This document shows positions 7,548 to 58,937 of a stretch of DNA of 64,000 nt, piece by piece. The stretch is taken from sequence record OQ708376.1; one strand, written 5' to 3'. Numbering within the stretch: position 1 is the first letter of the stretch; every line of letters starts with the position of its first letter. Both the position numbers and the translations under genes were made by a program. The notes beneath the pieces were generated by a model that was not told where the DNA came from, searched no databases, and saw only the letters and a list, made by a program, of their open reading frames with translations.

Positions 7548-7559
7548 CAAGGAGTAATA

Positions 7560-8492: not shown

Positions 8493-8495
8493 TAC

Positions 8496-8528: not shown

Positions 8529-8541
8529 AAGGAATATTATA

Positions 8542-10123: not shown

Positions 10124-10149
10124 GACGTATCAGAATTCGGTGATATAAT
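10122..10149 (+). promoter_or_regulatory. variant of the GGGACA-N16-TATAAT promoter
   Basis: GAGACG-N16 with TGA+TATAAT (10144-10149). Confidence 0.5.
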
Positions 10150-10180
10150 TTGATTACATCACCAATAGGGAGAAGTTGAA

Positions 10181-10507
10181 GTGAATGGTTCGTTTTTAAC
10201 AATATTAGAAAAGACAACCGAGATGCTTTCTAGCTCGTTAATGCAGATTTTCAGTACTAATAATTTATACAATACCCAGGTGTTAGATTCAATTAATAAT
10301 AACTATGTGGTAAGTATATCTGATGAAATATGTCCATTTAACGCGTATTCAATTTATAGTGTAGAAGAGTTTCATATATCCGAGATTCGATGTGGTTTTG
10401 GTGCTTGGTTAGTTCTAAATGAACGTTCAGGGTTGTCTTTATACATCGAAGAAGTTAGTAAATTTATATACAAAGGAGTAGAATATGTTAACCCCAATTA
10501 TTCTTAG
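10181..10507 (+). CDS. hypothetical protein
   Basis: GGGAG upstream of GTG. Confidence 0.6.
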   Translation: MNGSFLTILEKTTEMLSSSLMQIFSTNNLYNTQVLDSINNNYVVSISDEICPFNAYSIYSVEEFHISEIRCGFGAWLVLNERSGLSLYIEEVSKFIYKGVEYVNPNYS

Positions 10508-11123
10508 CAGTGCATATGTAATCGGTATTATTATTTCTGGTATGCTTGCATATAACTATAACCGAAGTGTTCTAGGTTATGTAGTACTTGGTACAGTACT
10601 AAGTCCAGTGATTGCTATTGGTCTTCTTGTTATGCTAGGTGAGAAAAATACAAGCTTCTTTATTACTAAAGAACTTGATAAAATCACCCCAGCACCAGAA
10701 ACAGTTATTCCAGAAGTTAAAGAAGAAGTTAAAGAAGTTAAAGAAGTTGAAGTGCAAATGCAAGTTAAAGTGTATAATACACTTGAAGAAACTGACCCTA
10801 AAGTTGTAGTGAATGTAGTTCCAGTCGTTGAAGAGGTGAAACCAAAAGCTCCTAAAGTACAGAAAAATACTAAAACTGCAAAGAAAGCTCGTTACACTAA
10901 AGGTAAGAACAAAGGTAAATCTAAGGATGAACCACAACTAGGTGTTCATGACCATACTGCACAAATTGCAACGGCAGCGACCGCAGCAGCAATCGTAACA
11001 TCACCAATCTACAACAATGATGATTACAGTGATTATAGCCGTCACAGCAGTTCTTCCTCTGATTCTTGTTCCTATGATAGCTCTAGTTCTGATTCAAGTT
11101 CATCTTCTGGAAGTTGTGATTAA
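10485..11123 (+). CDS. membrane protein with long disordered, Ser-rich C-terminus
   Basis: Two N-terminal hydrophobic helices, VKE repeats, Lys-rich linker, SSSSSDSCSYDSSSSDSSSSSGSCD tail; AAGGAG upstream. Confidence 0.8.
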   Translation: MLTPIILSSAYVIGIIISGMLAYNYNRSVLGYVVLGTVLSPVIAIGLLVMLGEKNTSFFITKELDKITPAPETVIPEVKEEVKEVKEVEVQMQVKVYNTLEETDPKVVVNVVPVVEEVKPKAPKVQKNTKTAKKARYTKGKNKGKSKDEPQLGVHDHTAQIATAATAAAIVTSPIYNNDDYSDYSRHSSSSSDSCSYDSSSSDSSSSSGSCD

Positions 11124-11452
11124 TGTCAATGAAACCACTAATTCAACATAATATTTTTTATAGGTCATTATTCAAAATTCAAGATGATTTTTATCAGACG
11201 TTGAGTAATGTTCTTATAGGTAAAACTGTACGATATTCGGAACAATACATCAAACGTATGACAAGTCAGTATATTGACCCTGAATACGAATACGACATTG
11301 AACACATTAATCCCAATACTAGAATGAAAATCATTGAGATATTTAAGAATGGGAGAACTATAGGTGCTGAAATTGAGTACTTAAATTGTGATTGTTACAT
11401 AGATACAGAGTTGAGTTTGGATTATCTTGTTTTAGTGGATGATGAGGAATAA
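11123..11452 (+). CDS. hypothetical protein
   Basis: TAATG overlap. Confidence 0.65.
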   Translation: MSMKPLIQHNIFYRSLFKIQDDFYQTLSNVLIGKTVRYSEQYIKRMTSQYIDPEYEYDIEHINPNTRMKIIEIFKNGRTIGAEIEYLNCDCYIDTELSLDYLVLVDDEE

Positions 11453-11454
11453 TT

Positions 11455-11670
11455 ATGATAACATTTTTCGCAATATATGGATTTGTAGCATTTGTTACAT
11501 TTATAACCAACTTTCTAGTACTTAATTGGGGTTGTTTTAAAGATGAAATCATGATTATCATGAATCTCCAAACAGCAGCACTGATGGCTATTATTTGGCC
11601 TGTAACGTTAGTATATATTTTTATTTCACTTACCCAAGATATTATTAACAAATATAAGAGAAAGAAATAA
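11455..11670 (+). CDS. small two-helix membrane protein
   Basis: Hydrophobic; AIIWPVTLV motif; GAGGA upstream. Confidence 0.7.
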   Translation: MITFFAIYGFVAFVTFITNFLVLNWGCFKDEIMIIMNLQTAALMAIIWPVTLVYIFISLTQDIINKYKRKK

Positions 11671-11921
11671 TGTTCAACAACGACTTATCACATTTGCGAT
11701 ATCTTATGTCTTTGGCTGATGATTTTATAAATGATCTGAAGCCAAAATATATTGGTCAAGAAGTACGATTAATAAACTCCAGAGGGTATGGAAAGTATAT
11801 TATTACTGATATGTATATTAGTGGTGGTGAATGGCGTTTTAAAATTAATACTTATCTTAAAGATGGTTCTTTTGCTGGAACACAAGTTACTAAACACACT
11901 AATATTATATGGTTGGAGTAA
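11670..11921 (+). CDS. hypothetical protein
   Basis: TAATG overlap. Confidence 0.65.
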   Translation: MFNNDLSHLRYLMSLADDFINDLKPKYIGQEVRLINSRGYGKYIITDMYISGGEWRFKINTYLKDGSFAGTQVTKHTNIIWLE

Positions 11922-11923
11922 TA

Positions 11924-12667
11924 ATGAAACATTTCTTAGAAGTAACCGTACCTGATGATAAAGATTTATACATTGTAGGTGATTTGCATGGTAATGGTAA
12001 ACTATGGGATGCTACAGTGAAAGAATTTGGTATTACACACAATGATTATGTTTTCAGTGTAGGTGATATTATCGACCGTGGAGAACAAAATTCAAAGCTC
12101 CTTTTTGAATTTTTGTTCGGAGAAAATCGTTACATGATTGCGGGTAATCATGAGATGATGTGCGTTGATTCGGAAACACTTCGAGATTGGTATCATTGTT
12201 GGATAAGTAATGGTGGTGATAAATTCCTTGATGAAGTTGGAGGAACAGGTATTCAATTCTTTCGTCAGTACTTGAAAGATCTCCCTATGATTATCCAAAT
12301 CAATCACCGAGGATTGAAGATTGGGTTAGTTCATGCTGGAGTTCCGTTGGAATATACAACATGGGAACGATTTGTTAATGGGACAAAATCACTTAGTGCT
12401 GATATAATTGATAAGTGCTTGTGGGATAGAAAAACATTCGATTATTGTAGAACTAATAATACATATTATGCACCTAAGTTAGATGGAGTGCATTGTGTCT
12501 TTAGTGGACATACAGCAGTTACAGACCCACTCATTTACGGTAATCGCATTTGGATTGATAGTCAGTTCTTGACGGGTGACTTAACTCTCGCTACTCCACA
12601 AAGTGGTGGAATGAGATACTTACGTAAAGAAAAAGATGAGTACTCATTCAATCGTTTCAAAAGGTAA
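11924..12667 (+). CDS. calcineurin-like Ser/Thr phosphatase (lambda NinI/PrpA-like)
   Basis: GDLHG, GDIIDRG, GNHE, HAG, GHT motifs; GGAG upstream of ATG 11924. Confidence 0.9.
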   Translation: MKHFLEVTVPDDKDLYIVGDLHGNGKLWDATVKEFGITHNDYVFSVGDIIDRGEQNSKLLFEFLFGENRYMIAGNHEMMCVDSETLRDWYHCWISNGGDKFLDEVGGTGIQFFRQYLKDLPMIIQINHRGLKIGLVHAGVPLEYTTWERFVNGTKSLSADIIDKCLWDRKTFDYCRTNNTYYAPKLDGVHCVFSGHTAVTDPLIYGNRIWIDSQFLTGDLTLATPQSGGMRYLRKEKDEYSFNRFKR

Positions 12668-12672
12668 TAATT

Positions 12673-12942
12673 ATGCATGATGTAGTTAAAAAATATTTGA
12701 ATGATAGATATATTATGAAAAAATCTATTAATTCTATCCTAAAAGACCATGCTAATCAAATACGTGAGATTCTATCAAATAAACTTATTGGTTGTTCAGT
12801 TGAGTTCAACTACAAAAAGAATGTCGTGAAGATTGGAGTTATTAAACGTGTAGTTGCTGTTTATGACCAAAATGTATATGTTGAAATTGAATATGATGGT
12901 AAATTATCACAATTAAGTACTGAAGATTTAACATTTTTATAA
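12673..12942 (+). CDS. hypothetical protein
   Basis: Packed + strand ORF. Confidence 0.65.
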   Translation: MHDVVKKYLNDRYIMKKSINSILKDHANQIREILSNKLIGCSVEFNYKKNVVKIGVIKRVVAVYDQNVYVEIEYDGKLSQLSTEDLTFL

Positions 12943-12952
12943 GGAAATAGAA

Positions 12953-13180
12953 ATGAAAGTAATTCAAGTTATGGTAGAAAAATACCAAACTGAAGATGGT
13001 CGTATTTTTGATTCAGCTAAACAAGCTGAACACCATGAACGTATTATTTCGGGTGCACGTAAAGTATGTCCTACATGTAATGGAACACAACAAGTACCGT
13101 CAGAAGATTACCGCAGCTTTTATGCTTGTCCACACTGTGATGGGAAAGGCTACGTAGAAAAACAAGAGGTATGGAAATGA
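12953..13180 (+). CDS. small DnaJ-type zinc-finger protein
   Basis: CPTCNGT and CPHCDGKG. Confidence 0.75.
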   Translation: MKVIQVMVEKYQTEDGRIFDSAKQAEHHERIISGARKVCPTCNGTQQVPSEDYRSFYACPHCDGKGYVEKQEVWK

Positions 13181-13590
13181 AATTGTATTGTTTAACTAAT
13201 ATGTACTGCCAAGGTGTCCAAGCTGGTATTCAAGCATTCCATGCTGGTGTTAAACTAATTAAAGAATATGAAGGTACTGCTTTCAGTACTATTATTGATG
13301 AATGGTACTATGAACACGAAACTATTGTAGTACTAAATGCTGGTGGACATGATAAGTTAAATTTTTATTATAACAACCTTAGCAAACAGGGAAAAGTTCC
13401 GTTTGCCAAATTCAATGAAGCTGGATTGAATGATGCTATTACCTGTGTAGCAGTACTGTGTACGTCTGAAATGATTGAAGACATGGCTGTTATGCGTATG
13501 AATCTTCCTGCTGGTGATCAACTAATGCAAGTAAAATATGGTGCATTGTTTGACACATTAAAAGCAATCAGCACAATGAGGACTATTTGA
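13177..13590 (+). CDS. PTH2-superfamily peptidyl-tRNA hydrolase-like protein
   Basis: GIQAFHA, W..EHETIVVLNAG, F.EAGL..AITCVAV pattern of phage Pth2-like proteins. Confidence 0.6.
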   Translation: MKLYCLTNMYCQGVQAGIQAFHAGVKLIKEYEGTAFSTIIDEWYYEHETIVVLNAGGHDKLNFYYNNLSKQGKVPFAKFNEAGLNDAITCVAVLCTSEMIEDMAVMRMNLPAGDQLMQVKYGALFDTLKAISTMRTI

Positions 13591-14789
13591 TGGATTTTCC
13601 AGAGAAGTTATTTGTTGCACGTTCCTATGTAAACCACAACCAAGTTGATGGTTTTATTATCGATGCAACAAAATCACATACAAAAGCGTTTGAAACAAAG
13701 AAAGAGAGAGCAGAGTACTGGGCAAAGAAGAACAATCTTCCATCGTTATATATTGACAACGTTCCAACTACGGGATTTTGTGTAGTTGATAAATTAACAA
13801 CTCATGCACGAGAAACATATTTCACGATCCGTCACCCAGAAGGATTTGAATTTATGATTAGTGCCAAAAACATGAATGATTTAATTATCAATAACGATAT
13901 AATCAAAGGTGTTTTTGTAGACCCAATGTTTTTCAACAATAACTTAGAATTAATTAATGGTAAAACAAAAACGTTTGCTAAGTTAGTTGAAAAAGAAAAT
14001 AAAAAAGAACAACAAAAAGAAACTGTAGCAGGTCTTAAAGTTGGTGATGGTTTCACTTATCTCAAAGAAGATTACTATTACTGCGGTAAAGTTCATGCAA
14101 TTTGTATAAAGAAAACTAAAGAATTTGCATACCCCGACAAAAGTTCTGTTTATCATTTACTTTTCAACAGTACTCGTGGAACTTATGCATTGAATCAACG
14201 TTTGGATAATTACAATCTGGAACCTCGTGCACTCTTGAATAAGAAGACTACGGCAGATGAAGAAATTAAACTTGCTAATGATTTTTGGCAAAGCTATAGA
14301 ACAAACAGACATAACCCATTAGGTGAATCTAACATTCCAGTACTGGTACACAATAAATCATTTAAAGCAAAAGACCTAAAAATTAAATATGAAGAAATAA
14401 ATGTTGATGATCTTATGAATAATGGACGTTTCAACGAGAACGTACCATTTATGACTAAAGATAATGAACAAACATATCGCGTATTTTTTGGTGTAAGTAA
14501 TAATACAACGCGTAGTTATTATGGGCGTAGTGGAGATTATAATATCCATTATAATGATAAATTTGAACGCTTTAGTGCATATCCAGTTCAAATTGATGAT
14601 AATGGGATTATGGTAATGGATGTTGATATTAATGAACACTCATCATTTAGTACATGGAATGGCTATCGTTCCCCATTCTTCCCACCAAATGAACGCAAAA
14701 CATCAAGTTCTCGTTACTACCAAGATAAGCCGTGTCACGTTCAACTATCAATTAGTAATCCACTTTATATTGGAAAGTATTATCTATAA
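13587..14789 (+). CDS. hypothetical protein (400 aa)
   Basis: Long ORF; no motif recognised. Confidence 0.8.
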   Translation: MMDFPEKLFVARSYVNHNQVDGFIIDATKSHTKAFETKKERAEYWAKKNNLPSLYIDNVPTTGFCVVDKLTTHARETYFTIRHPEGFEFMISAKNMNDLIINNDIIKGVFVDPMFFNNNLELINGKTKTFAKLVEKENKKEQQKETVAGLKVGDGFTYLKEDYYYCGKVHAICIKKTKEFAYPDKSSVYHLLFNSTRGTYALNQRLDNYNLEPRALLNKKTTADEEIKLANDFWQSYRTNRHNPLGESNIPVLVHNKSFKAKDLKIKYEEINVDDLMNNGRFNENVPFMTKDNEQTYRVFFGVSNNTTRSYYGRSGDYNIHYNDKFERFSAYPVQIDDNGIMVMDVDINEHSSFSTWNGYRSPFFPPNERKTSSSRYYQDKPCHVQLSISNPLYIGKYYL

Positions 14790-14800
14790 AGGAATATACA

Positions 14801-16219
14801 ATGAGCATTTTAGCAATTCTTGAAAGCATTAAAAATACTAGCAGTACACTAGGCAAAAAAGCTATTCTTGAACAAAATAAAGATAATGTAACTTTACAAA
14901 AAGTACTGAAATATACTCTAGACCCTTCTATCGTTAGTGGCTATAAGAAGCTCCCTGCCGCTGATGACGTATATCAACATATGACGTTAGATGAAGCAAT
15001 TGATAAGCTAGAATGCATTTACAAGCGTGATGTGACAGGAAATGCGGGGCGTGATTTCATTGCTTCAGTACTGGGTTCTGTATCTGAAGATGATCAGGAA
15101 GTTCTCCGTAAAATGCTTACTAAAAACCTTGATTGTGGTATTCAAGAAAAGAACTGCAATGATGTATTTGGTAAAGGCTTTATTAAAGACGAACCATATA
15201 TGCGTTGTTCTTTGATTGACAAAAAGACTGCAAAGAACATCAACTTCAAAGATTATGGTTACGCTATATCAGAAGTGAAAATGGATGGTCAGTACTTGAA
15301 CCACGTTGTTATTAATGGTTCATTAACTTCTACATCCCGTAATGGTAAACTATACGACTTCCTGGGTTGTCGTGATGGTGAGATGGCAGGTCTTGCTCAC
15401 ATCATCCAAAGTAAAGATGAACGTTTTAGTAGTGGTGTGGTCTTTATGGGGGAAGGTGTAGTACTGGACAATGATGGGGAAACCATTCTCCCACGCACTA
15501 CTGGCAACGGTATAATTCAGAAAGCTGGTAAAGATAGCATCAGTCAGAATGAAGCAATGCGTACTGTATTCGTTCTATGGGATGTTGTTCCATATGATGC
15601 ATTTTGTGAAGGTGTATGGGATGTAAAACGTAAAGAACGTCGCGAGATCTTAGTAGATGCAATTAACGAACTCAATAGTGATTTTGTTCGTATGGTTGGA
15701 TTCCGTAAAGTTCTAAACATCAAAGAAGCATTTGAGTACAATAGTGAACTAATGAACGAAGGTGAAGAGGGTTCAGTACTGAAATGTGAAGATGGTATCT
15801 GGAAATCTCACACTTCTCCGAAGCAGTTGAAAATGAAATTGAAAATGCAACTAGACTTGCGTATTGTTGGTTTCAATGAAGGTGAAGGTAAACGTAAAGG
15901 AAGCCTAGGTTCTTTACAACTGGAAAGTGCTTGTGGTTCATTGAAAGTTAATGTGGGTACTGGTATCAAAGAGAAAGATGCTGAATGGACATTTAAAACC
16001 ATTTGGGAAAGAATGCAAGAACTTATTGGTAAAGTGGTTACAGTTGAGTGTAATGACATTGTATTCGAGAAGCGTACTGGTGAGCCATCACTGTTCTTAC
16101 CAGTGTTTATTGAATTTAGATTTGACAAAAACACTTGTGACGACTATACTCGTATTTTAGAAATTCGTGATAGTGCTGTTGAGGTGTTCTCAAACAGTAT
16201 CATTGAATCACTTGGCTAA
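14801..16219 (+). CDS. ATP-dependent DNA ligase (T4 gp30-like)
   Basis: Motif I EVKMDG, SRNGK, motif III GEG, WDV, EGSVLK, K.K, OB fold GSL...VNVGTG, FLPVF..FR.DK. Confidence 0.95.
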   Translation: MSILAILESIKNTSSTLGKKAILEQNKDNVTLQKVLKYTLDPSIVSGYKKLPAADDVYQHMTLDEAIDKLECIYKRDVTGNAGRDFIASVLGSVSEDDQEVLRKMLTKNLDCGIQEKNCNDVFGKGFIKDEPYMRCSLIDKKTAKNINFKDYGYAISEVKMDGQYLNHVVINGSLTSTSRNGKLYDFLGCRDGEMAGLAHIIQSKDERFSSGVVFMGEGVVLDNDGETILPRTTGNGIIQKAGKDSISQNEAMRTVFVLWDVVPYDAFCEGVWDVKRKERREILVDAINELNSDFVRMVGFRKVLNIKEAFEYNSELMNEGEEGSVLKCEDGIWKSHTSPKQLKMKLKMQLDLRIVGFNEGEGKRKGSLGSLQLESACGSLKVNVGTGIKEKDAEWTFKTIWERMQELIGKVVTVECNDIVFEKRTGEPSLFLPVFIEFRFDKNTCDDYTRILEIRDSAVEVFSNSIIESLG

Positions 16220-16238
16220 ACACTTATAGGAGGTAATT

Positions 16239-17030
16239 ATGAAATTTGTTGTAACGTCTGACGTACACGGTGGTACTGATTACCTCCATAGTGGTGATTA
16301 CAGTGATACAGTACTGATTATTGCTGGGGACTTCGATGAAGTTAAACGCAGTCGTTACCGTACTGGTATAGAATCACTATGTAAGCAGTTTAAGAATGTA
16401 GTACTGGTTCCTGGCAATCATGAATATTATGGTTCCAATATCCACAAAACGCATAAAGTACTGTCCGATATGCAAGATGAGATTCCTAATTTCATCTTTT
16501 TGCAAAACAAATTTGTATGGCTGGATGGAGTACTGCTTGTTGGTAGTACTCTGTGGACAGACTTCGATAAAGGTAATTCTTTGACGAAGTTTGATGCTCG
16601 TCTGAAGATGAACGATTACAAACATATCCGTCATGGAACAACATCAGAGCCTTGGCGTAAGAAACTGACACCAGATGATACTGAGTTTATGCATCACAAA
16701 GATAAACAATTTATCAAAAATTCTATTGACACAGTTCGCTTTATGCATGATAATGATTTCAAGGTCATCGTGGTTACCCATCACGCACCAAGTTATCAAA
16801 GTGTTTCACCAAAATATAAAAATGATTCACTGAATGGTTGTTACTGTTCCGATATGGATCAGTACATTGAAGATTTGGGTGCTGATGTTTGGATTCATGG
16901 TCATGTTCATAGTAGTTTTGACTACCACATTGGTAAGACACGTATCATTTGTAATCCACGAGGCTATGAATCATACAGTGGAGCTTGTGAGAATTTTGAT
17001 TACAATCCTAAATTTGTATTTGAAATTTAA
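16239..17030 (+). CDS. calcineurin-like metallophosphoesterase
   Basis: SDVH, AGD, PGNHEYY, THHAP, GHVH, NPRGY. Confidence 0.9.
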   Translation: MKFVVTSDVHGGTDYLHSGDYSDTVLIIAGDFDEVKRSRYRTGIESLCKQFKNVVLVPGNHEYYGSNIHKTHKVLSDMQDEIPNFIFLQNKFVWLDGVLLVGSTLWTDFDKGNSLTKFDARLKMNDYKHIRHGTTSEPWRKKLTPDDTEFMHHKDKQFIKNSIDTVRFMHDNDFKVIVVTHHAPSYQSVSPKYKNDSLNGCYCSDMDQYIEDLGADVWIHGHVHSSFDYHIGKTRIICNPRGYESYSGACENFDYNPKFVFEI

Positions 17031-17042
17031 TGAGAGGATATT

Positions 17043-17426
17043 GTGTCATTAATTTATTTTGAACTACCAGAATATACCAATTATCCAAGCCGAGTTATTT
17101 GCTCAGTTTATAGTAATGCATATCATCACTTGTTAGTGAATAGTAATAAAGCTGTGCATTATTATCGAAATAAAGAACCACGTACATTAAAGAATCGTTA
17201 TGGGTTTGACCCAACTAACACTGAAGTTGAACTCTGTGATCTGTTCGGGGAAGTAATGGTGGTGTTGAAACGAGATATTCATCTTTTCCATACATACAAA
17301 CTTAATCAGTACTTTATGGAAACACTGTCTATACGTTCCCATGCTCCGATGATTAAAGTTGATTTGAATTATGTTGATGATAAATTGAAATATGATTTCA
17401 TTAATTCACTTGTTTATTTGGAGTAA
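17043..17426 (+). CDS. hypothetical protein
   Basis: GAGGA upstream of GTG. Confidence 0.65.
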   Translation: MSLIYFELPEYTNYPSRVICSVYSNAYHHLLVNSNKAVHYYRNKEPRTLKNRYGFDPTNTEVELCDLFGEVMVVLKRDIHLFHTYKLNQYFMETLSIRSHAPMIKVDLNYVDDKLKYDFINSLVYLE

Positions 17427-17427
17427 T

Positions 17428-17832
17428 ATGAATATACGTTCAGTACGAATATTTTCATTTGTTGATATGAATAAAAAACACTCTTATGTGTTTGAAAATG
17501 TCAATAAGTTAAATCCTCATACGGCAAAAATGATTGAAACCATGAAGAACTTGAGTTTACATATAGAAGTTTACTATCTTCATGACGATTCTGTTTATGT
17601 ATATGATGATGGATGGTATGACGGTGTGTTTTATTATGACATTAGCACTACTGCTGATTACTACTTTCTAGTGAGTAATCCACTATTCAGTACTAAAACT
17701 TTGTTTGACATTACCGATACAAGCGTGTATGATACAAGTCATGTTGAGTTACTTAAGTTTGATCCAGTATTATTCAACAAAGAGACGGCGTATTGGATGA
17801 CTGATTTCTTTTCAAATATTCCAGTAAAATAG
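17428..17832 (+). CDS. hypothetical protein
   Basis: GGAG upstream of in-frame ATG 17428. Confidence 0.65.
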   Translation: MNIRSVRIFSFVDMNKKHSYVFENVNKLNPHTAKMIETMKNLSLHIEVYYLHDDSVYVYDDGWYDGVFYYDISTTADYYFLVSNPLFSTKTLFDITDTSVYDTSHVELLKFDPVLFNKETAYWMTDFFSNIPVK

Positions 17833-17834
17833 TT

Positions 17835-17862
17835 TGGACATTTTAAATCTTAGTGATATAAT
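17835..17862 (+). promoter_or_regulatory. promoter, TGGACA-N16-TATAAT (extended -10)
   Basis: TGGACA 17835-17840, TGA+TATAAT 17857-17862, upstream of clpP. Confidence 0.7.
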
Positions 17863-17896
17863 ACTCACAACAACGAAATAATAGAGGAAATTAATA

Positions 17897-18592
17897 ATGG
17901 TTGAACAATTCATGTTTGGTGGTTATGCTAATGGCGAAGTACGTAACATTTCTATTCCTTACGTAGTTGAGAAAGTTAATGGTTCAGAACGTACATATGA
18001 TCTAGCATCTCGTATGATGCAAGACCGTATCATTTTCCTTGATACTGATTTCAATGATCAAATGGCACATATCATCAAACAACAATTGGTATGGTTAGAC
18101 TCACAAGGTGATTCCCCTATTACATTCTACATTAGTTCACCGGGTGGTTCAGTACACGCAGGTTTGGGTATTGCAGATGTTGCTAAGTCTTGTATTTCCC
18201 CAATTCGCACTGTAGTTATGGGTTATGCAGCATCAATGGGTTGCTATACACAATCTGTTATTGGGACTAAAGGTTTCCGTTTAGGTGGTAAACGCTCATA
18301 CTTCATGTGTCACCAAGTAAGTTCTGGTACACAAGGTCTAATTACAGACCAGAAGATTTCCCTACAACATTCTGATGCACTGAATACATTGTTGACCAAA
18401 GAAATTGCAGAAGCTGTAGGTGTATCACATGAACAATTACTAAAAGATGCTGACCGCGATTTGTGGTTAAATGCAGAAGAAGCACTTGAATATGGTGAAC
18501 ATGGTTTCATTGATGGTATTATTCTTGGACCACGTAACGAAGAAGGTAAGTACTTAGTTAAGCGTCGCGGCGGTGTAGAAGAGTGGGTGTAA
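17897..18592 (+). CDS. clpP: ClpP protease proteolytic subunit
   Basis: IPYVVE, DRIIFL, ISSPGGSV, catalytic Ser in YAASMG, His in FMCHQ, Asp in DRDLWL; EALEYG..FID. Confidence 0.93.
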   Translation: MVEQFMFGGYANGEVRNISIPYVVEKVNGSERTYDLASRMMQDRIIFLDTDFNDQMAHIIKQQLVWLDSQGDSPITFYISSPGGSVHAGLGIADVAKSCISPIRTVVMGYAASMGCYTQSVIGTKGFRLGGKRSYFMCHQVSSGTQGLITDQKISLQHSDALNTLLTKEIAEAVGVSHEQLLKDADRDLWLNAEEALEYGEHGFIDGIILGPRNEEGKYLVKRRGGVEEWV

Positions 18593-18640
18593 GATAGATT
18601 GTGATGCCTCAATATGGGGCATCATCTTTGTGGAGATTAT

Positions 18641-18931
18641 ATGAAAGTACTAGTACGTAATAATACGGAAGTAGCAAATGTATTAGAAGATTCCGATTTT
18701 ATTAATGTTGCGTTCGATCAAATTAGTGCAGTAGCACTTGAATTAAAAAATGTAGATGAATCTGAGCGTGTGCTGAATGGTTTTGCAATTGTACTTGAAT
18801 TAATGAAGGAAGTACTAATTAAAAAGAACATTAATCCAGTTGATGCGGTTCAACATGCAGAAGCTGTGCGTAAAGAACACGGTACATTCTCTGACAAAAA
18901 ATACATTCAAACTGATGAGGTAAAAGAATAA
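18641..18931 (+). CDS. hypothetical protein, possibly a degenerate MazG-like NTP pyrophosphohydrolase
   Basis: C-terminal VLEL...RKEHGTFSDKKY resembles the E.ADVLEV...K.EERGGF family; acidic motif eroded. Confidence 0.45.
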   Translation: MKVLVRNNTEVANVLEDSDFINVAFDQISAVALELKNVDESERVLNGFAIVLELMKEVLIKKNINPVDAVQHAEAVRKEHGTFSDKKYIQTDEVKE

Positions 18932-18932
18932 T

Positions 18933-19379
18933 ATGTCCAATGCACAATATAAAGATGGTTATGACGCATACAAAGCAAAAGTAGTTCTAAGTGCTGAACA
19001 GCTAAAAATGCAGCATCCATTATATCGTCAGGGCTATCGTGCAGCACAAGCAGAAGCAATGAAGAAAAATAATGTAACTTTCCCTACTACACTATATGAT
19101 ATTCCAAAACGTCCACACATTTTTAAAGCTGAATGGACTGATATTATGGCAGCGACAAAGCGTCCACGCTTTGCTAAATTACACACCGATGAAGGTCGCT
19201 GGTTGCTAATGGGGATTATGAAAGCAGTTGAGAATCAATCTCATAAGATTGTTCGTTATAAAGATGTTGTTGCTATGGTTGATAAAGCATTTGACCTTGT
19301 ACTTCAATATGGTTATGATGAAGGTGTTCTAACTGTCGCTGATTGTGAAAAATATCAGTACACCCCATATCAAAAATAA
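18933..19379 (+). CDS. hypothetical protein
   Basis: Packed + strand ORF. Confidence 0.75.
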   Translation: MSNAQYKDGYDAYKAKVVLSAEQLKMQHPLYRQGYRAAQAEAMKKNNVTFPTTLYDIPKRPHIFKAEWTDIMAATKRPRFAKLHTDEGRWLLMGIMKAVENQSHKIVRYKDVVAMVDKAFDLVLQYGYDEGVLTVADCEKYQYTPYQK

Positions 19380-19388
19380 TATTGTGAA

Positions 19389-19418
19389 AAGGAATCCTAT
19401 CATGGGATTCCTATTTTT
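19389..19418 (+). terminator. intrinsic terminator
   Basis: AGGAATCCTA-tca-TGGGATTCCT then ATTTTT. Confidence 0.7.
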
Positions 19419-19499
19419 ATTGCTGTATATCAATTTTCCATTGATCATATTTTGATCTATATGAGCTAAATACCCAAGGAATCATTGTTACTAGGGTAG

Positions 19500-20054
19500 G
19501 TGAATATGCAGCAATATAATTTAACTGAAGAACAAAGTGATATTTTTTACCATCATATGTTTTTAATTGATGAATTTGCTTTAAAAATTAATTCCGAAGC
19601 AATTGATATATTGAAGAAATGGTATAGTTGTTATAATAAAAACAAAAAGTGGTATTGGTTTAATAGAAATATAAAATCATTTCTAAAAACAATCACATAC
19701 ACTGATAGTATTGAGTTAATACATAGTTCTATTGGATATAGTTACTTAACTAAACACAACAGTACTATGATGTTATCAGGGTTTAAAGTTGAAAGAATTT
19801 CCAAGTTAACAGGTTTGTCATTAGAAACAATTCTATATGATATTGAGAAAATTTGGAAAACTATAGAATTAATGCATAAAAATATGTCATTCATATATAG
19901 AAATTATGATATATTCACTGATGTACGACAATATCATAATAAACCGTATGTATTGGATGAAAAGTACTATAATCATATGGAAGTTTGTTCTAAACTCGTT
20001 GATGATTGGAATCTAGAGGGACATAATGAAATACACACACCTAAGTATAGATGA
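19500..20054 (+). CDS. hypothetical protein
   Basis: 184 aa; start GTG 19500 or ATG 19506. Confidence 0.7.
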   Translation: MNMQQYNLTEEQSDIFYHHMFLIDEFALKINSEAIDILKKWYSCYNKNKKWYWFNRNIKSFLKTITYTDSIELIHSSIGYSYLTKHNSTMMLSGFKVERISKLTGLSLETILYDIEKIWKTIELMHKNMSFIYRNYDIFTDVRQYHNKPYVLDEKYYNHMEVCSKLVDDWNLEGHNEIHTPKYR

Positions 20055-49171: not shown

Positions 49172-49476
49172 AAAAATTATTAGTTCCGTTTATTTCTTTT
49201 TTAATTATAAGTGGATGTGCAGAACAAGTAAAACTACAATCCCCTACACCAATTAAACAAGAAATTCTGTTAGAAAGATGTGATGATGATACACCTCTAC
49301 CACAAAAAATTATGATTGACAAAAATGGTTTTAAAGGTTATGATGGTGCAGAAATTCTTAAAGTACTTACTCGTTGGGATGCAGTATACAACGAATGTGC
49401 TTTAAAACATGATGCATTAATTAAAACTATTCGTGATTTACAAGGTAAAGATATTAAAATCAATATCAAGGAATAA
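49168..49476 (+). CDS. o-spanin lipoprotein (Rz1-like)
   Basis: Lipobox ISG-C; later C residues and YNECALKH; ATGA overlap. Confidence 0.8.
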   Translation: MKKLLVPFISFLIISGCAEQVKLQSPTPIKQEILLERCDDDTPLPQKIMIDKNGFKGYDGAEILKVLTRWDAVYNECALKHDALIKTIRDLQGKDIKINIKE

Positions 49477-49477
49477 A

Positions 49478-50089
49478 ATGAACAAATATCATGTTTACTA
49501 TACGACCAAATTATCACTTCTTGACGAATTAAATCAACGAAGTACTAAGATGAAACGCTACACTTTAAATGGTATTACTTTTCGATATTTCCCACAAAAA
49601 GTTCTTACATTTATTAAGAATCCAAAATGCGTGGCATGTGGGATTGAAGCTACTGAAGTACGCATTGAACGTTCATTATGTTCTGATCCAGTATATGGTA
49701 AACCACATTTAAATGTATATGCTGTATGTGGTCTTTATGAAGTTTTAATGACAGTTGACCATAATCATCTGGCATCTAAGGGTGGACCTGATTTAGAGTC
49801 AAACTTTAATACTATGTGCTCCAGATGTAATCAACTACGTTCGAATAAAACTGAAACAGTTGATGAGTTTCTTGAGAAAGTTAAAGGTCGTAATCTTCTC
49901 CAAGAACATATGAATAATTTCTTTAATGTACAAAAAAAGAAAAATAACATTGACAAGTCGAAACTACTAGAAGAACGTAGGTTACGTCAAGAATTATGGG
50001 AAACTGATCATCTATGGCATGTTCGAGAGTTTGGTCGTCATATGAAAGCATTGAAAAAAGAACAGAAGAAATTGAATAAACATGATTGA
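49478..50089 (+). CDS. HNH endonuclease
   Basis: CVACG...TVDHNHLASKGG...N...MCSRCN; AAGGA upstream of ATG 49478. Confidence 0.85.
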   Translation: MNKYHVYYTTKLSLLDELNQRSTKMKRYTLNGITFRYFPQKVLTFIKNPKCVACGIEATEVRIERSLCSDPVYGKPHLNVYAVCGLYEVLMTVDHNHLASKGGPDLESNFNTMCSRCNQLRSNKTETVDEFLEKVKGRNLLQEHMNNFFNVQKKKNNIDKSKLLEERRLRQELWETDHLWHVREFGRHMKALKKEQKKLNKHD

Positions 50090-50100: not shown

Positions 50101-50130
50101 AGGGACTTGAGTATTCAAGTCCTTTTTTTT
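50101..50130 (+). terminator. intrinsic terminator
   Basis: AGGGACTTGA-gtat-TCAAGTCCT-TTTTTTT. Confidence 0.85.
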
Positions 50131-50142: not shown

Positions 50143-50415
50143 ATGAAAACAAAATTATTTCCACAACAAATAATGATTGAACTGTGCGAACATCAGTCTG
50201 GTGAAGTTGTTACAATCAGTGGTGATACGTATTCCATCATTTTAAATGAACAACAATTTGATCATACAAACCATACGAATGAACTGTATAATCTTATGTT
50301 TATGGACGATAAGAGTGAAAAATACTATCATTGTACATATGAACGATGTATAGATACAACACCATTTTGTAATGAAATGGTTGGTGTTAAATGTTATGAA
50401 TGTGAAGTGTTATGA
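50143..50415 (+). CDS. hypothetical protein, duplicate copy 1
   Basis: MKTKLFPQQIMIELCEH...KYYHCTYER; GGAG upstream of ATG 50143. Confidence 0.7.
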   Translation: MKTKLFPQQIMIELCEHQSGEVVTISGDTYSIILNEQQFDHTNHTNELYNLMFMDDKSEKYYHCTYERCIDTTPFCNEMVGVKCYECEVL

Positions 50416-50435: not shown

Positions 50436-50792
50436 ATGAAAACAAAAATCTTTCTACCACAAACCATGATGGAACTGTGTGAACATGATGCAGGGGATGT
50501 TGTCACTATTAGTGGTTCCTGGAATGAGAGTACTGAAGACTTTATGCCAGATGAGGTATATTCTGTTGTTTTAAATGAACAGTACAATACAAGCCGTTGG
50601 AATGCACAGTACAATCTAGTTTTTCTTGACAATAACAATGAAAAGTACTATCATTGTACGTATGAACGAGGTCTGACAGAACGTAACTACACAACTCCTT
50701 TCTGTGATGAAATGGATGGTGTAAAGTGCTATGAAGTTTATGTTCGTCAGGTTCCAGTTGTTACTTACAAAACCGAGTGGGATTATCTGTAA
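50436..50792 (+). CDS. hypothetical protein, duplicate copy 2
   Basis: MKTKIFLPQTMMELCEH...KYYHCTYER. Confidence 0.75.
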   Translation: MKTKIFLPQTMMELCEHDAGDVVTISGSWNESTEDFMPDEVYSVVLNEQYNTSRWNAQYNLVFLDNNNEKYYHCTYERGLTERNYTTPFCDEMDGVKCYEVYVRQVPVVTYKTEWDYL

Positions 50793-51190
50793 TGCTTAAA
50801 GATTTAGATTTTTCAAATTTAGAGATCATCAGTGCAGTGAAGAATATTACTGATATGGATGATGAAAAAGGTGTAATGGTAACTATCACTTTCGTAAAGG
50901 AAGAGGATAGCTATAAGCATCTTACTGGAATTGAAGAACTAATTCATAAAACCAATCTTGAGAATGATGGTAAACTCATCAAGCTTCAGGCTTCATATAC
51001 GCAAAAAACGTCAAATTTTATAGACCTAAATAATGTAGTCAAGGTGGTATACAATCATCCTGATCACACATATAGGAACACGACAAGAAATGAAAATGTT
51101 GCTAACGATTCGAATATTATCGAAGATGTTGAATTCATAAACACAATTTTTGATCGTTGTTCTAAGGATTTAAAAAAAGTATACATGTAA
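50792..51190 (+). CDS. hypothetical protein
   Basis: TAATG overlap at 50792. Confidence 0.7.
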   Translation: MLKDLDFSNLEIISAVKNITDMDDEKGVMVTITFVKEEDSYKHLTGIEELIHKTNLENDGKLIKLQASYTQKTSNFIDLNNVVKVVYNHPDHTYRNTTRNENVANDSNIIEDVEFINTIFDRCSKDLKKVYM

Positions 51191-51191
51191 T

Positions 51192-51219
51192 GGGACATTA
51201 TATGTTCCAATGATATAAT
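51192..51219 (+). promoter_or_regulatory. promoter, GGGACA-N16-TATAAT class
   Basis: GGGACA 51192-51197, TGA+TATAAT 51214-51219. Confidence 0.7.
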
Positions 51220-51293
51220 GTATATAGAAAATGACAACGGACATTGAAAAATGGACACTGAGAACCTACTTCTCTTGAAAATGTAAAGGATAG

Positions 51294-51410
51294 ATGAGCT
51301 TTACCGTTGTAGCGAACAGCAGAAGAAACCTGTTAGAGTACTGGCATTTAAACAAACACGATGTAAGACCACGAATCACGGCGACACGGCTGTATAAAGA
51401 ACTCCGATAA
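51294..51410 (+). CDS. candidate micro-ORF (38 aa)
   Basis: MSFTVVANSRRNLLEYWHLNKHDVRPRITATRLYKELR; AAGGA 3 nt upstream. Confidence 0.3.
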   Translation: MSFTVVANSRRNLLEYWHLNKHDVRPRITATRLYKELR

Positions 51411-51433
51411 GCATACAGAGAGTTCCTAGATAG

Positions 51434-51598
51434 ATGTATAAGGTTCGCACCTTACCAGATTTGCTAAGGGAGTTTAAGAATAGCGGACGCAATTTTACAA
51501 GAAAGTTGCGTCCAAAATTTGAGAACAGGTACTACTTTGATCGAATAGAGTTAGTACTGAGTGCTGTTGATGAAAAGACCAGCGACCGTTGCATATGA
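51434..51598 (+). CDS. candidate micro-ORF (54 aa)
   Basis: MYKVRTLPDLLREFKNSGRNFTRKLRPKFENRYYFDRIELVLSAVDEKTSDRCI. Confidence 0.35.
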   Translation: MYKVRTLPDLLREFKNSGRNFTRKLRPKFENRYYFDRIELVLSAVDEKTSDRCI

Positions 51599-51677
51599 CT
51601 GCGATAGAGAGAAACCGAGCAACCCGCTTTCGCTCTCTAAATTTTGGTACAAGAAAGATCCGTCCAAAATTTGAGAA
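51496..51677 (+). repeat. 30-nt direct repeat, two copies (51496-51525, 51648-51677)
   Basis: TACAAGAAAGTTGCGTCCAAAATTTGAGAA vs TACAAGAAAGATCCGTCCAAAATTTGAGAA, 28/30 identical. Confidence 0.9.
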
Positions 51678-51693
51678 ATTCGCAATTCGATAA
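51595..51693 (+). CDS. candidate micro-ORF (32 aa)
   Basis: MTAIERNRATRFRSLNFGTRKIRPKFEKFAIR; ATGA overlap with the 54 aa ORF. Confidence 0.35.
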   Translation: MTAIERNRATRFRSLNFGTRKIRPKFEKFAIR

Positions 51694-51713
51694 TATCCGA
51701 TGCCATCATCGTC

Positions 51714-51738
51714 AAGAGAGACTTAATTGTCTCTTTTT
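51714..51738 (+). terminator. intrinsic terminator
   Basis: GAGAC-ttaatt-GTCTC-TTTTTT. Confidence 0.7.
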
Positions 51739-51878
51739 TATTATCTTCATTCCCCTGCGGGGGATGTAATAGTCCTCAACAAATCCCGTCAAGTTTTTAA
51801 AGTACATTATCATTTTCAGAAGGAACTAGTTTACGAAGTAAACGCAGTGACTTCTTGAGTTACGAGAGAACGAAGTGA

Positions 51879-52307
51879 ATGAGTAACACAACGAAAATAT
51901 CCGATAAATCTGAATTAACACAAATGTTATTCAAAGAATATTTTGAGTTCCAGATAAAAGACGAACATCAATTACCACAGCAATATTTGAAAAGAATTAA
52001 AGATCCGTCAGTAATTACTAAAGAAACTAATTTTTATAATAGTATTTTAGATTTCGTTAAATCAGTTCATACAACAAGACCTATTGTAGTTTTGTTTTTT
52101 GATAAATCTATTCCTTTAGTAGTTCCTGAAAATGTATTTTTTATCTCAGAAACTGATTTAAATAATCAAAGTACTGTAAGTAGATTAAGAAATTGCTTAC
52201 TTGTAGTATGTGATTCTTCTTTGTATATTAATAGAATACTATGGGATAGAAGTAAACGCAATACAGTTTCGGAAATGAATCCTGAAATTACCTTTATTAT
52301 TAACTAA
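51879..52307 (+). CDS. hypothetical protein
   Basis: 142 aa ORF. Confidence 0.65.
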   Translation: MSNTTKISDKSELTQMLFKEYFEFQIKDEHQLPQQYLKRIKDPSVITKETNFYNSILDFVKSVHTTRPIVVLFFDKSIPLVVPENVFFISETDLNNQSTVSRLRNCLLVVCDSSLYINRILWDRSKRNTVSEMNPEITFIIN

Positions 52308-52339: not shown

Positions 52340-52780
52340 ATGGAAGATATTAATGATTTACGACACGTAATGGACTTTATCGGAAGTACTGAAGAAGATA
52401 ATTCATATGATGAAGTACTATTAACTTTTATTGAAAATAGTTTGTTTTTGAGTTCTGCTGCACATAACTGGCACTTACAATGTCATTTTTATACAAAGCA
52501 TTTACAATTAGATGAACTATATAAAGAATTACCAGAATATGTAGACGCATTTGTTGAAGGTATCATGAATAATCGTGGTGCTTTACAAGTTGGGACTGGT
52601 AATAGTTATCGTTTTACACCAATTGAAGATTGTGTACCAATTCTTGAAGAATATGTTGAGCAATGCAGAGCAATTCATGATATGCTTGAAGAATCGGGTG
52701 ATTACGGCAGTGTAAACACATTAGAAGATATTATGAGTTTTGTTGAAGGCGTACTTTACAAACTTAAAGTTTTACAATAA
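52340..52780 (+). CDS. Dps/ferritin-like protein
   Basis: AHNWH...HLQLDELY...DAFVE ferroxidase-type pattern; AAGGAG upstream. Confidence 0.75.
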   Translation: MEDINDLRHVMDFIGSTEEDNSYDEVLLTFIENSLFLSSAAHNWHLQCHFYTKHLQLDELYKELPEYVDAFVEGIMNNRGALQVGTGNSYRFTPIEDCVPILEEYVEQCRAIHDMLEESGDYGSVNTLEDIMSFVEGVLYKLKVLQ

Positions 52781-52788
52781 ACTATATG

Positions 52789-52817
52789 GAGAGTCGTTAT
52801 GACTCTCCTTTTCTTTT
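52789..52817 (+). terminator. intrinsic terminator
   Basis: GAGAGTC-gttat-GACTCTC then T-rich run. Confidence 0.7.
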
Positions 52818-57661: not shown

Positions 57662-58588
57662 TTGAAACAAGCGAAAAAAGCACTGAAAACTAAGACTACT
57701 TATGGTGTTCTAGTTTGCACAGTACTTGTCGCTGCGATTGGATTTTATGGTTTTTCTCAAAATGATCGTGTATCATCATCGGACGAAAGTCAGGTACACA
57801 ATTTAAAACCACAAGTTACGCAAATTCAAAAGCAGGAATTACCAAAGGTAGAAATATCAAAGGATGTTCCACGCGGCGAGAAGCATTATACGGTTCAACC
57901 TGGTGATAGTTATTATTCTATTGCTAAAAAGTTTAAACCTAAAAATGTACAACTTGAAGAGTATGTTATTTTGTTGAAAAATATCAATTTAAATGCTACT
58001 CTTCATACTTCTCAGGGTATCTTTATCCCAACAAAAGAGGATTTGAAGAACGTATTGTTACCAGATGTGACTGTACTGTTTGATTATAATGATCCAGAAA
58101 TTGTCAATCACATCAAAGAAGCTGAAGGTTCAATTGAATTTCAGTCCAAGAACAAACGCCGTTTACTTGGTGGGAAAGTCGGAGTTCCTTTCCACAATTC
58201 TAAATTTCATCCCTACAAGGACATGAAAGGTAATTATACAATAGGTTATGGGCATTATTTGGGTAGAAAAGAATCTGATGCGATTAAGTACAGAAACGGT
58301 ATTACCAAAGCTCAAGCCAATAAACTTTTAATGCAAGATATGAAAAGAACATATAATGACTTTTTATTATTGATGCAGAAAAAAGAAGCAGTAAATCTGA
58401 CCAAAGAACAACAACGTATTCTTTATGAAATGTCCTATACAATGGGTGTTGATAAATTAGCAACGTTTAATAAACTTTGGAAAAGTGTGAAAAATGATAA
58501 CCCTAAGAAATTTAAAAAAGAAATTATGAATTCCTTATGGTATCGTCAAGTTACAAACCGAGCAGATTTGTTGTTAAGTTCACTCTAA
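57662..58588 (+). CDS. membrane-anchored LysM + T4-lysozyme-like muramidase
   Basis: N-terminal TM helix; LysM YTVQPGDSYYSIAKKF; lysozyme IKEAEG, YKD..G..TIGYGH, LWYRQV..RA; TTG start 4 nt after AAGGAGG. Confidence 0.85.
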   Translation: MKQAKKALKTKTTYGVLVCTVLVAAIGFYGFSQNDRVSSSDESQVHNLKPQVTQIQKQELPKVEISKDVPRGEKHYTVQPGDSYYSIAKKFKPKNVQLEEYVILLKNINLNATLHTSQGIFIPTKEDLKNVLLPDVTVLFDYNDPEIVNHIKEAEGSIEFQSKNKRRLLGGKVGVPFHNSKFHPYKDMKGNYTIGYGHYLGRKESDAIKYRNGITKAQANKLLMQDMKRTYNDFLLLMQKKEAVNLTKEQQRILYEMSYTMGVDKLATFNKLWKSVKNDNPKKFKKEIMNSLWYRQVTNRADLLLSSL

Positions 58589-58604
58589 AAAAGGTAGGTA
58601 AATT

Positions 58605-58937
58605 ATGCTAAAATTAAATATTCAAGGTAATGTTGATTTTACTACAGCAATTCAAGATGCAATTTACGATGGTGCTAAATGTCTTGAAAAGTTCCGTACT
58701 TCAACTGTAATGGATATTGAAGTTCATGTGAAGAAAGAGCATAAGTCTCAATACTCTGTGACTATAACATCAGGTAGTAAATCAGTTACTGCCGATGCAG
58801 CAGATTTATACAAAGCAATTGGTGATTCATTTGAAAAAATGGAAACTGTATTCAGTAAAGACAAAAGCATTAAATTACACCGCCGAAACCATCCAGAACA
58901 CCCAGTTCTTAATGATTTGACAGAAAACGAAGAGTAA
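58605..58937 (+). CDS. hpf: ribosome hibernation factor (HPF/RaiA-like)
   Basis: LNIQG.NVDFT.AI, DLYKAIGDSFEKM pattern matches HPF; acidic tail. Confidence 0.75.
   Translation: MLKLNIQGNVDFTTAIQDAIYDGAKCLEKFRTSTVMDIEVHVKKEHKSQYSVTITSGSKSVTADAADLYKAIGDSFEKMETVFSKDKSIKLHRRNHPEHPVLNDLTENEE

Follow-up and report, generated by a model that had tools for sequence, protein, structure and literature searches.

The 64,000 nucleotides (nt) of DNA analysed here, referred to as the window, match at 100% identity the Escherichia phage vB_EcoM_CRJP21 (OQ708376.1), a Rak2-like jumbo phage of 366 kilobases (kb) that belongs to Asteriusvirus, and window positions equal positions in that record minus 62,000. 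Between 51191 and 51878 neither strand of the window holds an open reading frame (ORF) of more than 54 amino acids (aa), and the question raised by this locus is what such a gap encodes. A preliminary description, made from the letters of the window, had seen in it an undescribed large structured non-coding RNA (ncRNA) of a phage, for instance a decoy, a sponge or a scaffold. On the evidence of alignments, the region is a stand-alone gene for an ncRNA of about 510-570 nt, on the plus strand and with its own host-type promoter, and it almost certainly represents a real and new family of structured ncRNA genes.

Upstream, the gap is bounded by the end of a gene for a DUF7325 'structural protein' (50777-51190, stop codon included), and downstream by the start of a 142-aa ORF (51879). 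Besides the gap itself, the preliminary description had pointed to a raised G+C content, a promoter and a 30-nt direct repeat, and all of these were recovered. The G+C fraction is 0.38-0.42 over 51200-51800, against 0.24-0.31 in the flanks; the two copies of the repeat (51496-51525 and 51648-51677) are 93% identical and lie in different hairpins; and the promoter scan returned GGGACA, a 16-nt spacer and TATAAT at 51192-51219, with a TG at 51211-51212 that makes the -10 box an extended one. Promoter-like sites are not enriched in the region (19 found, 18.4 expected), and the promoter is regarded as real because of its conservation, the TG-n-TATAAT block being invariant in both alignments that include it (11 and 26 sequences). 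In two divergent metagenomic members TACAAT stands in place of TATAAT. The predicted folding energy of -129 kcal/mol is low relative to shuffled sequences (z = -3.8), but so is that of the opposite strand (z = -3.4), and therefore energy alone proves little and leaves the strand unfixed. The gene and its promoter are placed as follows.

51226-51791, plus strand: gene for the structured ncRNA (copy A of the four), delimited by the predicted +1 and the last base of the CCUCAACAAAUCCCGUCA block (nhmmer, alignments and covariation).
51192-51219, plus strand: sigma-70 type promoter, with a -35-like GGGACA (51192-51197), a 16-nt spacer, TG (51211-51212) and TATAAT (51214-51219) (scan and conservation).

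Homologues were detected by BLAST in 72 of 50,697 phage records, distributed over nine host genera: Escherichia (33 records), Klebsiella (11), Salmonella (8), Erwinia (8), Yersinia (4), and Cronobacter, Pectobacterium, Xanthomonas and Serratia (2 each). The genome measures 310-386 kb in every record listed or fetched, and the matching regions are mostly unannotated. Between distant genera identity is about 67-71% across the core, and the flanks are unmatched. Larger collections were scanned with degenerate IUPAC patterns taken from invariant alignment columns, and profile hidden Markov models (HMMs) and one covariance model were also built; the pattern scans yielded 23 loci in IMG/VR and 40 in metagenomes, nearly all on contigs of 350-370 kb and with up to three on one contig. 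The representative genomes of 185,579 species gave zero matches to two core patterns, and no family member was found in the plasmids searched. Judged from these searches, the family occurs in Rak2-like jumbo phages only (Asteriusvirus, Mimasvirus, Eneladusvirus, Alcyoneusvirus and their relatives), apart from one intact copy in a rare Escherichia coli island. Each phage genome holds three to five diverged, co-oriented paralogues; in the whole CRJP21 genome there are four, all on the plus strand and 62-75% identical in pairwise comparisons (coordinates of the record).

58,358-58,835, plus strand: paralogue D, 3.2 kb before the start of the window.
113,220-113,792, plus strand: paralogue A, the locus studied and the sole copy inside the window.
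193,664-194,166, plus strand: paralogue B, between two minus-strand structural genes.
304,122-304,601, plus strand: paralogue C.

Paralogues D, B and C each occupy an unannotated gap of 650-840 nt. Upon clustering of 68 members, paralogue types were found to be common to different genomes, and therefore the duplications are old, each type having been retained. The neighbouring genes vary between phage genera, and those directly downstream are antisense at paralogue B and in phages Munch and Hallingskeid; such differing and sometimes antisense neighbours argue that the RNA unit is a stand-alone gene. The core of the preliminary proposal is strongly supported, whereas the existence of a multi-copy family and of a bacterial copy could not be seen from the window alone.

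The evidence for a structured RNA comes from compensatory base changes. In an alignment of 26 sequences RNAalifold assigned 63 pairs, 35 of which show compensatory double changes. All-against-all covariation of single columns was too noisy, and therefore stacked covarying helices were sought among 37 members no more than 95% identical, giving 79 pairs in 18 helices, of which 97.0% are canonical and 53 pairs change on both sides. In 300 column shuffles, a control that ignores phylogeny, 80.4 +/- 0.5% of the pairs were canonical and 35 +/- 2.3 were double-change pairs, and none of the 300 reached the observed values; when the 3' partners were slid by one to three columns, a control that favours a structure derived from the same sequences, the figures fell to 38-45% and 11-22 pairs. 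The margin over both controls is very large, and many helices show three to five pair types with zero mismatches. Likewise, the divergent copy of phage RaK2 keeps 13 of the 17 helices present there, several with new compensating letters, P4, PK3, P11 and P12 (listed below) being re-compensated. G-U pairs are fixed in 31-37 of the 37 sequences in P8, P9, P11 and the 3' hairpin, and therefore the RNA strand is the plus strand. The covariation on which the preliminary description had let its proposal depend is accordingly strong across the 37 homologues, both with RNAalifold and in the counted helix set.

As predicted from these changes, the fold is compact, with at least 18 helices, four of which are pseudoknots or long-range pairings (PK1-PK4), and many invariant unpaired bases. 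Its elements, from 5' to 3', are the following.

51234-51310, plus strand: PK1, between the 5' strand ACAACGG (51234-51240; counted core 51236-51240) and CCGUUGU in the P3 loop (51304-51310).
About 51242-51254, plus strand: P1, a variable hairpin between the PK1 5' strand and P3.
51266-51293, plus strand: P2, a hairpin in three parts (51266-67/51292-93, 51271-72/51289-90 and 51274-76/51286-88), the apical loop of which is conserved.
51298-51300 / 51311-51313, plus strand: P3 stem.
51316-51393, plus strand: P4, ACAGC (51316-51320) with GCUGU (51389-51393), 100% canonical in the 37 sequences, three covarying pairs.
51330-51333 / 51378-51381, plus strand: P5, CUGU with ACGG, enclosed by P4 along with a variable insert.
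51384-51437, plus strand: PK2, ACA of the P5-P4 internal loop (51384-51386) with UGU (51435-51437), 100% canonical, two covarying pairs.
51399-51404 / 51420-51425, plus strand: P6, GAACUC with GAGUUC, spanned by PK2, six of six pairs covarying.
51439-51454, plus strand: P7, hairpin UAAGGU/ACCUUA, in which both sides of the stem vary between lineages (by eye, uncounted).
51485-51525, plus strand: site-1 insert module, a 12-base-pair (bp) hairpin (51485-51513) whose 3' strand opens repeat copy 1 (51496-51525), present in some lineages only.
51529-51557, plus strand: P8, a long hairpin with inner stem 51534-51539 / 51546-51551 and an apical loop AUCGAAU (51540-51546) that forms PK3.
51540-51691, plus strand: PK3, a 7-bp long-range helix between the P8 loop (51540-51546) and AUUCGAU (51685-51691), directly 3' of P10.
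51562-51584, plus strand: P9, a hairpin with stem base 51562-51564 / 51582-51584.
51588-51592 / 51619-51623, plus strand: PK4, GUUGC with GCAAC, joining the strand before P10 to the P11 loop, 100% canonical.
51600-51604 / 51680-51684, plus strand: P10, UGCGA with UCGCA.
51607-51611 / 51627-51631, plus strand: P11, GAGAG with CUUUC, its G-U pair present in 37 of 37 sequences.
51634-51637 / 51673-51676, plus strand: P12, UCUC with GAGA.
51639-51677, plus strand: site-2 insert module, a 9-bp stem (51639-51647 / 51664-51672) extending P12, with repeat copy 2 (51648-51677).

In PK1 four of the five counted pairs change on both sides, and the letters of this 5-7-bp helix are very different between lineages, while PK3 is 97% canonical with six of its seven pairs covarying. 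PK4 is invariant in most members, and paralogue C alters three of its five pairs on both sides. About 90 positions are invariant, in runs of up to 8 bases; many of them lie in junctions, and they cluster around PK4, P10 and P11, the 3' core (PK4, P10, P11 and P12; 51588-51684) holding the longest invariant runs of the family. The block AAGGGA (51466-51471), 3' of P7, is the same in all 37 members. The insert modules with the 30-nt repeat occur once, twice or not at all, depending on the member. Three of the seven helices drawn in the preliminary description are real in CRJP21: TAAGGT/ACCTTA (51439-51454) is the conserved hairpin P7, and the 12-bp (51485-51513) and 9-bp (51639-51672) stems belong to lineage-specific insert modules. 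The other four (GAGAA/TTCTC, AACAG/CTGTT, GTTGCA/TGCGAT and TAGAGAG/CTCTCTA) are contradicted by covariation, which places their bases in P2, P4/P5, PK4/P10 and P11/P12, respectively.

A short motif, CGUC[AC]A, is found four times in the RNA (51509, 51661, 51710 and 51787; 0.2 expected), twice within the 30-nt repeats and twice flanking the terminator-like and G+C hairpins of the 3' end. The two flanking copies have changed in concert in phage RaK2, where each reads CUUCA. As a protein site common to the family the motif was rejected, since in its strict form it is not universal. A terminal helix in which the 5' end would pair with the region past 51791 (a 30-nt inverted repeat) was also discarded as a feature of the family, as duplex energies in 19 members were no better than those of shuffled sequences.

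The compensatory pairs are accompanied by an absence of coding signal, the combination that characterizes a conserved structured ncRNA. No ORF is conserved among the members, the longest ones measuring 14-70 aa at differing positions, and column variability in the alignment shows no 3-base (lag-3) periodicity. Several GenBank records do place short genes for 'hypothetical proteins', on one strand or the other, within the RNA: gene 516 of phage 121Q (4403-4558 of the retrieved segment), g347 and g348 of fHe-Yen9-04 (1703-1855 of the retrieved segment), and small coding sequences in two further records. Because of the covariation and the absence of a conserved ORF, these annotated small proteins very probably result from spurious gene calls.

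The preliminary description had been unable to assign the RNA to a family, and the same outcome was obtained with Rfam 15, which returned no match at gathering thresholds over the whole 64-kb window. The families covered include ROOL, GOLLD, HEARO/omega RNA, group I and II introns, RNase P, 6S RNA, transfer-messenger RNA (tmRNA), riboswitches and the known ribozymes. With permissive filters, 50900-52100 gave only four chance-level matches (E 1.1-7.6; 17-24 bits where the thresholds are 45-80), each of them to a eukaryotic small nucleolar or long non-coding RNA model; the E. coli island copy likewise had no match in Rfam, and ARAGORN found no transfer RNA or tmRNA in the window. Three further candidates were rejected. 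A group I intron is ruled out by the conserved promoter of the unit and by flanking genes that are unrelated, and sometimes antisense, between genera. A riboswitch or other cis-regulatory leader tied to a conserved class of downstream gene does not agree with downstream genes that differ among paralogues and genera, some of them antisense. A type III antitoxin RNA would not be expected to show two non-tandem repeats 152 nt apart and no adjacent toxin gene; the neighbours of the locus encode a DUF7325 protein, an unknown protein and a DUF5856/ferritin-like protein. The literature search found no description of the RNA family. The proposal of an undescribed large structured phage ncRNA therefore stands, on covariation in 37 homologues with neither a conserved ORF, an Rfam family nor a published description.

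The 3' end called for a revision. A unit running from promoter to terminator had been proposed, and both the promoter and a terminator-like hairpin were found, but strong conservation continues about 50 nt past the hairpin, to 51791.

51717-51739, plus strand: terminator-like hairpin AGAGAC (51717-51722) / GUCUCU (51729-51734) with a U run to 51739 (scan; four of six pairs covary).
51748-51791, plus strand: conserved 3' tail, consisting of a G+C hairpin, CAUUCCCC-UGC-GGGGGAUG (51748-51766), and the block CCUCAACAAAUCCCGUCA (51774-51791) (alignments).

The scan for terminator-like sites gave five matches in the region against 1.1 expected, the match to hairpin and U run spanning 51714-51739. 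In CRJP21 the CCUCAACAAAUCCCGUCA block is found at the RNA loci only (three in the portion of the genome scanned, with one exact match in the window) and is therefore taken as part of the RNA unit. It was rejected as a general phage promoter, because TG-n-TATAAT occurs about 100 times whereas the block is present just at the RNA loci. The island copy of E. coli and its nearest phage paralogue are homologous exactly as far as this block, and for that reason the conserved 3' boundary was set at 51791; a shorter form of the RNA that ends at the U run, at about 51739, is possible. The terminator-like hairpin is missing in 9 of the 37 members, paralogue C among them. Six of these nine have instead a strong hairpin with a U6 run a few bases after the -10 box; they represent a single paralogue type, found in Eneladusvirus, Mimasvirus and phages from metagenomes, and this arrangement is hard to square with simple transcription from the promoter. 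Downstream of the unit, about 100-140 nt are semi-conserved among phages and include a hairpin with covarying stems. In CRJP21 a hairpin GUUAC/GUAAC at 51859-51887 contains in its loop and 3' arm the AUG (51879) of the next ORF, and its counterparts in other phages have covarying stems and a similar loop; given the position of the AUG, it may control translation or belong to a longer RNA. Sharing of this downstream region with the islands was rejected, since the HMM finds nothing significant there.

A full-length member is present in two of 5,426 complete E. coli genomes, LR-29-1 (NZ_AP027515.1; 13,870-14,496 of the retrieved segment) and EEC_W5. This copy has the same type of promoter, is 75.6% identical to CRJP21 copy A and 80.6% identical to a paralogue of Serratia phage BF, and keeps 16 of the 18 helices fully intact, the other two being one pair short each. 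Its site is an island of about 10.8 kb, flanked by ffs and ybaA, which also carries genes for a tyrosine integrase (with one IS3 interruption), several unknown proteins, a resolvase, a DUF2188 protein and a PADLOC candidate defence system, PDC-M45, of three genes (DuOB, DUF488 and mSLOG-DUF4326). Homology between island and phage is restricted to the RNA gene; with tblastn no island protein had a homologue in jumbo phages, which rules these proteins out as phage-derived partners of the RNA, and the non-coding flanks were likewise unmatched. It follows from this limited homology that the RNA gene alone moved between phage and island, probably from phage to island considering the depth and ubiquity of the family in phages. 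Related islands are widespread in Enterobacterales, their core comprising a recombinase, proteins of about 480-500, 257 and 118 aa, variable cargo and a resolvase. Chromosomal islands of Klebsiella/Raoultella contain only a remnant of the RNA gene (about 3,330-3,466 of the retrieved segments, between the integrase gene and a 498-aa gene), which keeps the promoter and the 3' tail and has one internal deletion; the Klebsiella islands lie at the same chromosomal site as that of E. coli, and their remnant (nhmmer E = 1.5e-11) retains the CCUCAACAAAUCCCGUCA block. Island variants with a serine recombinase have neither RNA gene nor remnant. In the islands of E. coli and of Klebsiella alike, a short ORF (35-45 aa) lies ahead of the RNA promoter.

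As to what the RNA does, we favour a role in the contest between phage and host. Host RNA polymerase would transcribe the gene from early in infection, and the RNA would act in trans through its three-dimensional fold, and not by coding, base-pairing with a target or controlling a fixed downstream gene; most probably it would bind one or more protein partners, as a scaffold or a decoy. Phage-host conflict is favoured because the RNA gene and its promoter alone moved to or from an island otherwise filled with candidate defence genes, and because the genomic neighbours differ between phage genera. The best overall explanation, in which a new structured ncRNA gene and a trans-acting role in conflict are joined, appears to us fairly probable, while the trans-acting, conflict-related interpretation of the RNA as such is put forward tentatively. 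Several points weigh against it. No RNA-seq data were found for Rak2-like phages carrying the RNA, and the 5' end at about 51226 is a prediction from promoter spacing; the 3' end is ambiguous, with a terminator-like hairpin inside the conserved unit. Conservation past that hairpin, together with the semi-conserved stretch further downstream, shows that the core is not where transcription or function ends on the 3' side, which fits a cis-acting leader too. All copies within a genome are co-oriented, something not required of a trans-acting gene. No partner protein was identified, and action in trans is an inference. Finally, with two E. coli genomes in 5,426 and mere remnants in Klebsiella, the island copy could have been captured passively and not long ago.

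These points lead to the main rival, a cis-acting antitermination or attenuation leader, in which the folded RNA modifies its own polymerase, in the manner of put RNAs, or senses a signal, so that transcription passes the internal terminator into the downstream genes; the four co-oriented copies would then be four entry points for terminator-resistant transcription of the 350-kb genome. The order of promoter, structured RNA, intrinsic-terminator-like hairpin and further conserved sequence, which fits most members, is what such a leader would show; so are the semi-conserved hairpin region after the unit, the dispersal of the copies at 58, 113, 194 and 304 kb in the orientation of most genes, and the location of the E. 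coli and Klebsiella island cassettes upstream of co-oriented island genes. Nevertheless, the leader would be without its terminator hairpin in the nine members described above, six of them with a hairpin and U run directly after the -10 box; it would face antisense genes at paralogue B and in Munch and Hallingskeid, and genes unrelated between copies elsewhere; and it would be built of 18 helices where known put RNAs have about 70 nt. We consider this explanation unlikely, although it deserves to be kept in mind.

Rather less likely is an assembly made of RNA only, in which the RNA, or the four paralogues together, would form a multimer comparable to those of ROOL and GOLLD, some of the 'pseudoknots' being in fact kissing contacts between molecules. 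The size class, the phage origin, the ornate fold and the lack of a linked partner gene all agree with this possibility, and so does PK3, where a loop pairs with a distant strand through six covarying pairs out of seven, covariation being blind to the difference between intra- and intermolecular contacts. There is no similarity in sequence or model to ROOL or GOLLD. An equally speculative reading would make the four paralogues the subunits or isoforms of one RNA-based machine needed early in infection, and the captured copy an RNA mimic with which the islands sense or poison phages; such a machine might take the form of a ribozyme, of a particle of hetero-oligomeric RNA or of a large RNA that reprograms the polymerase and, if this were true, an RNA-for-RNA arms race would have developed around a new class of ornate RNA.

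That the pseudoknotted core with its invariant unpaired bases is the catalytic centre of a ribozyme, for example one that processes or cleaves RNA, seems improbable: the four pseudoknots and the roughly 90 invariant positions, concentrated at PK4, P10 and P11, would suit it, but there is no match to an Rfam ribozyme family, no substrate-like conserved flank was identified, and invariant junctions are equally typical of RNAs that bind proteins or ligands. Still harder to sustain is an origin-associated RNA, whose transcript would prime or open the DNA at replication origins, as in the precedents of ColE1 RNA II and the T4 origin R-loops, with four copies marking four origins and the island having borrowed one. 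Four dispersed and co-oriented copies would be in line with it, as would the runs of G and of C that closely follow the terminator-like hairpin (51751-51763) and, in the E. coli island, the iteron-like repeats located a few hundred bases downstream from the RNA gene; cumulative GC skew, on the other hand, tracks gene orientation with no feature at the four RNA loci, and known origin transcripts do not need such a complex fold with compensatory helix changes. A protein-coding gene that is decayed or unusual can practically be dismissed, and so can an ordinary mRNA leader, for even though both 30-nt repeats translate to similar peptides within short ORFs and some records annotate small ORFs, the repeats are in different frames, no ORF position or length is conserved in the 37 members, 3-base periodicity is absent, and invariant runs of up to 8 bases with compensatory stem changes suit an RNA and not codons.

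Around the RNA gene, the HNH endonuclease gene at 49433-50089 (Pfam HNH, E = 1e-5) lies 1.1 kb upstream and is followed by a strong terminator (50101-50124). The genes at 50143-50415 (90 aa) and 50436-50792 (118 aa), which had been described as duplicated, are indeed mutual paralogues, with similar N-termini and a shared YYHCTYER motif, and their products match no Pfam family. The gene at 52340-52780, previously called Dps-like, matches DUF5856 instead (E = 4e-28), the ferritin-like domain being found weakly (E = 0.002), and a two-way terminator-like hairpin (52788-52808) comes after it. Elsewhere in the genome, the CRJP21 record holds both copies of a long direct terminal repeat (about 1,700-20,000 and 347,900-366,150), in which gp_584 to gp_632 repeat the order of genes gp_1 to gp_49, and a 3.7-kb stretch at 344,148-347,887 is unannotated.

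The RNA is conserved across a clade of 310-386 kb phages, in several diverged copies each, and it is unannotated in the records examined; in addition, a bare RNA gene within a defence-rich bacterial island hints at phage-host conflict at the level of RNA. To our knowledge, large RNAs with multiple pseudoknots are rare. Those of the past turned out to be ribozymes, riboswitches, the cores of ribonucleoproteins or, most recently, RNA-only cages, and with about 500 nt and strong covariation the present one is a ready target for structure determination.

Among known systems, the put RNAs of phage HK022 are cis-acting antiterminators of about 70 nt and two stem-loops. Like them, the RNA described here is a phage element that stands just after a host-type promoter and ahead of a terminator; unlike them, it is 7-8 times larger, is predicted to contain four pseudoknots and in some members has no terminator. 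RNA II of ColE1, likewise transcribed from a sigma-70 promoter, is similar in its length of about 550 nt and in having a function that depends on folding, but it is not known to be pseudoknotted or conserved in this way, and no origin features were found at the RNA loci. Antitoxins of the ToxI type and the pseudo-antitoxins of phages share with it a phage-borne ncRNA, an internal repeat and a possible role against a host system; in ToxI, however, short tandem repeats lie beside a toxin gene, whereas the two 30-nt repeats of CRJP21 are in separate hairpins 152 nt apart, and many members have one or none. In the distantly related Pseudomonas jumbo phage PA5oct, four transcribed regions without ORFs, ncRNA001-004, have been defined by RNA-seq with lengths of 236-619 nt (PMC7318152), and ncRNA004 is on the plus strand between minus-strand structural genes, with a C-run/G-run hairpin at its end. 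Homology to these RNAs was rejected, the best nhmmer match (E = 0.012) being 46 nt long and limited to the 3' hairpin, and cmsearch with filters off, using a covariance model of the 5' domain only, giving E >= 0.35. The closest parallel in general character is provided by ROOL and GOLLD, which are reported, on the basis of cryo-electron microscopy, to form RNA-only complexes (preprint 10.1101/2024.12.08.627333). These too have several hundred nt, an elaborate pseudoknotted structure and often a phage as carrier, and stand alone with no linked protein gene. The RNA of CRJP21 differs in showing no similarity to their Rfam models, in belonging to lytic Rak2-like jumbo phages of Enterobacterales and not to Lactobacillales or rumen elements, and in being present as three to five diverged paralogues per genome. 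Within the loose phenomenon of large ornate RNAs it forms a separate class, set apart by sequence and architecture as well as by the number of its copies and the range of its hosts.

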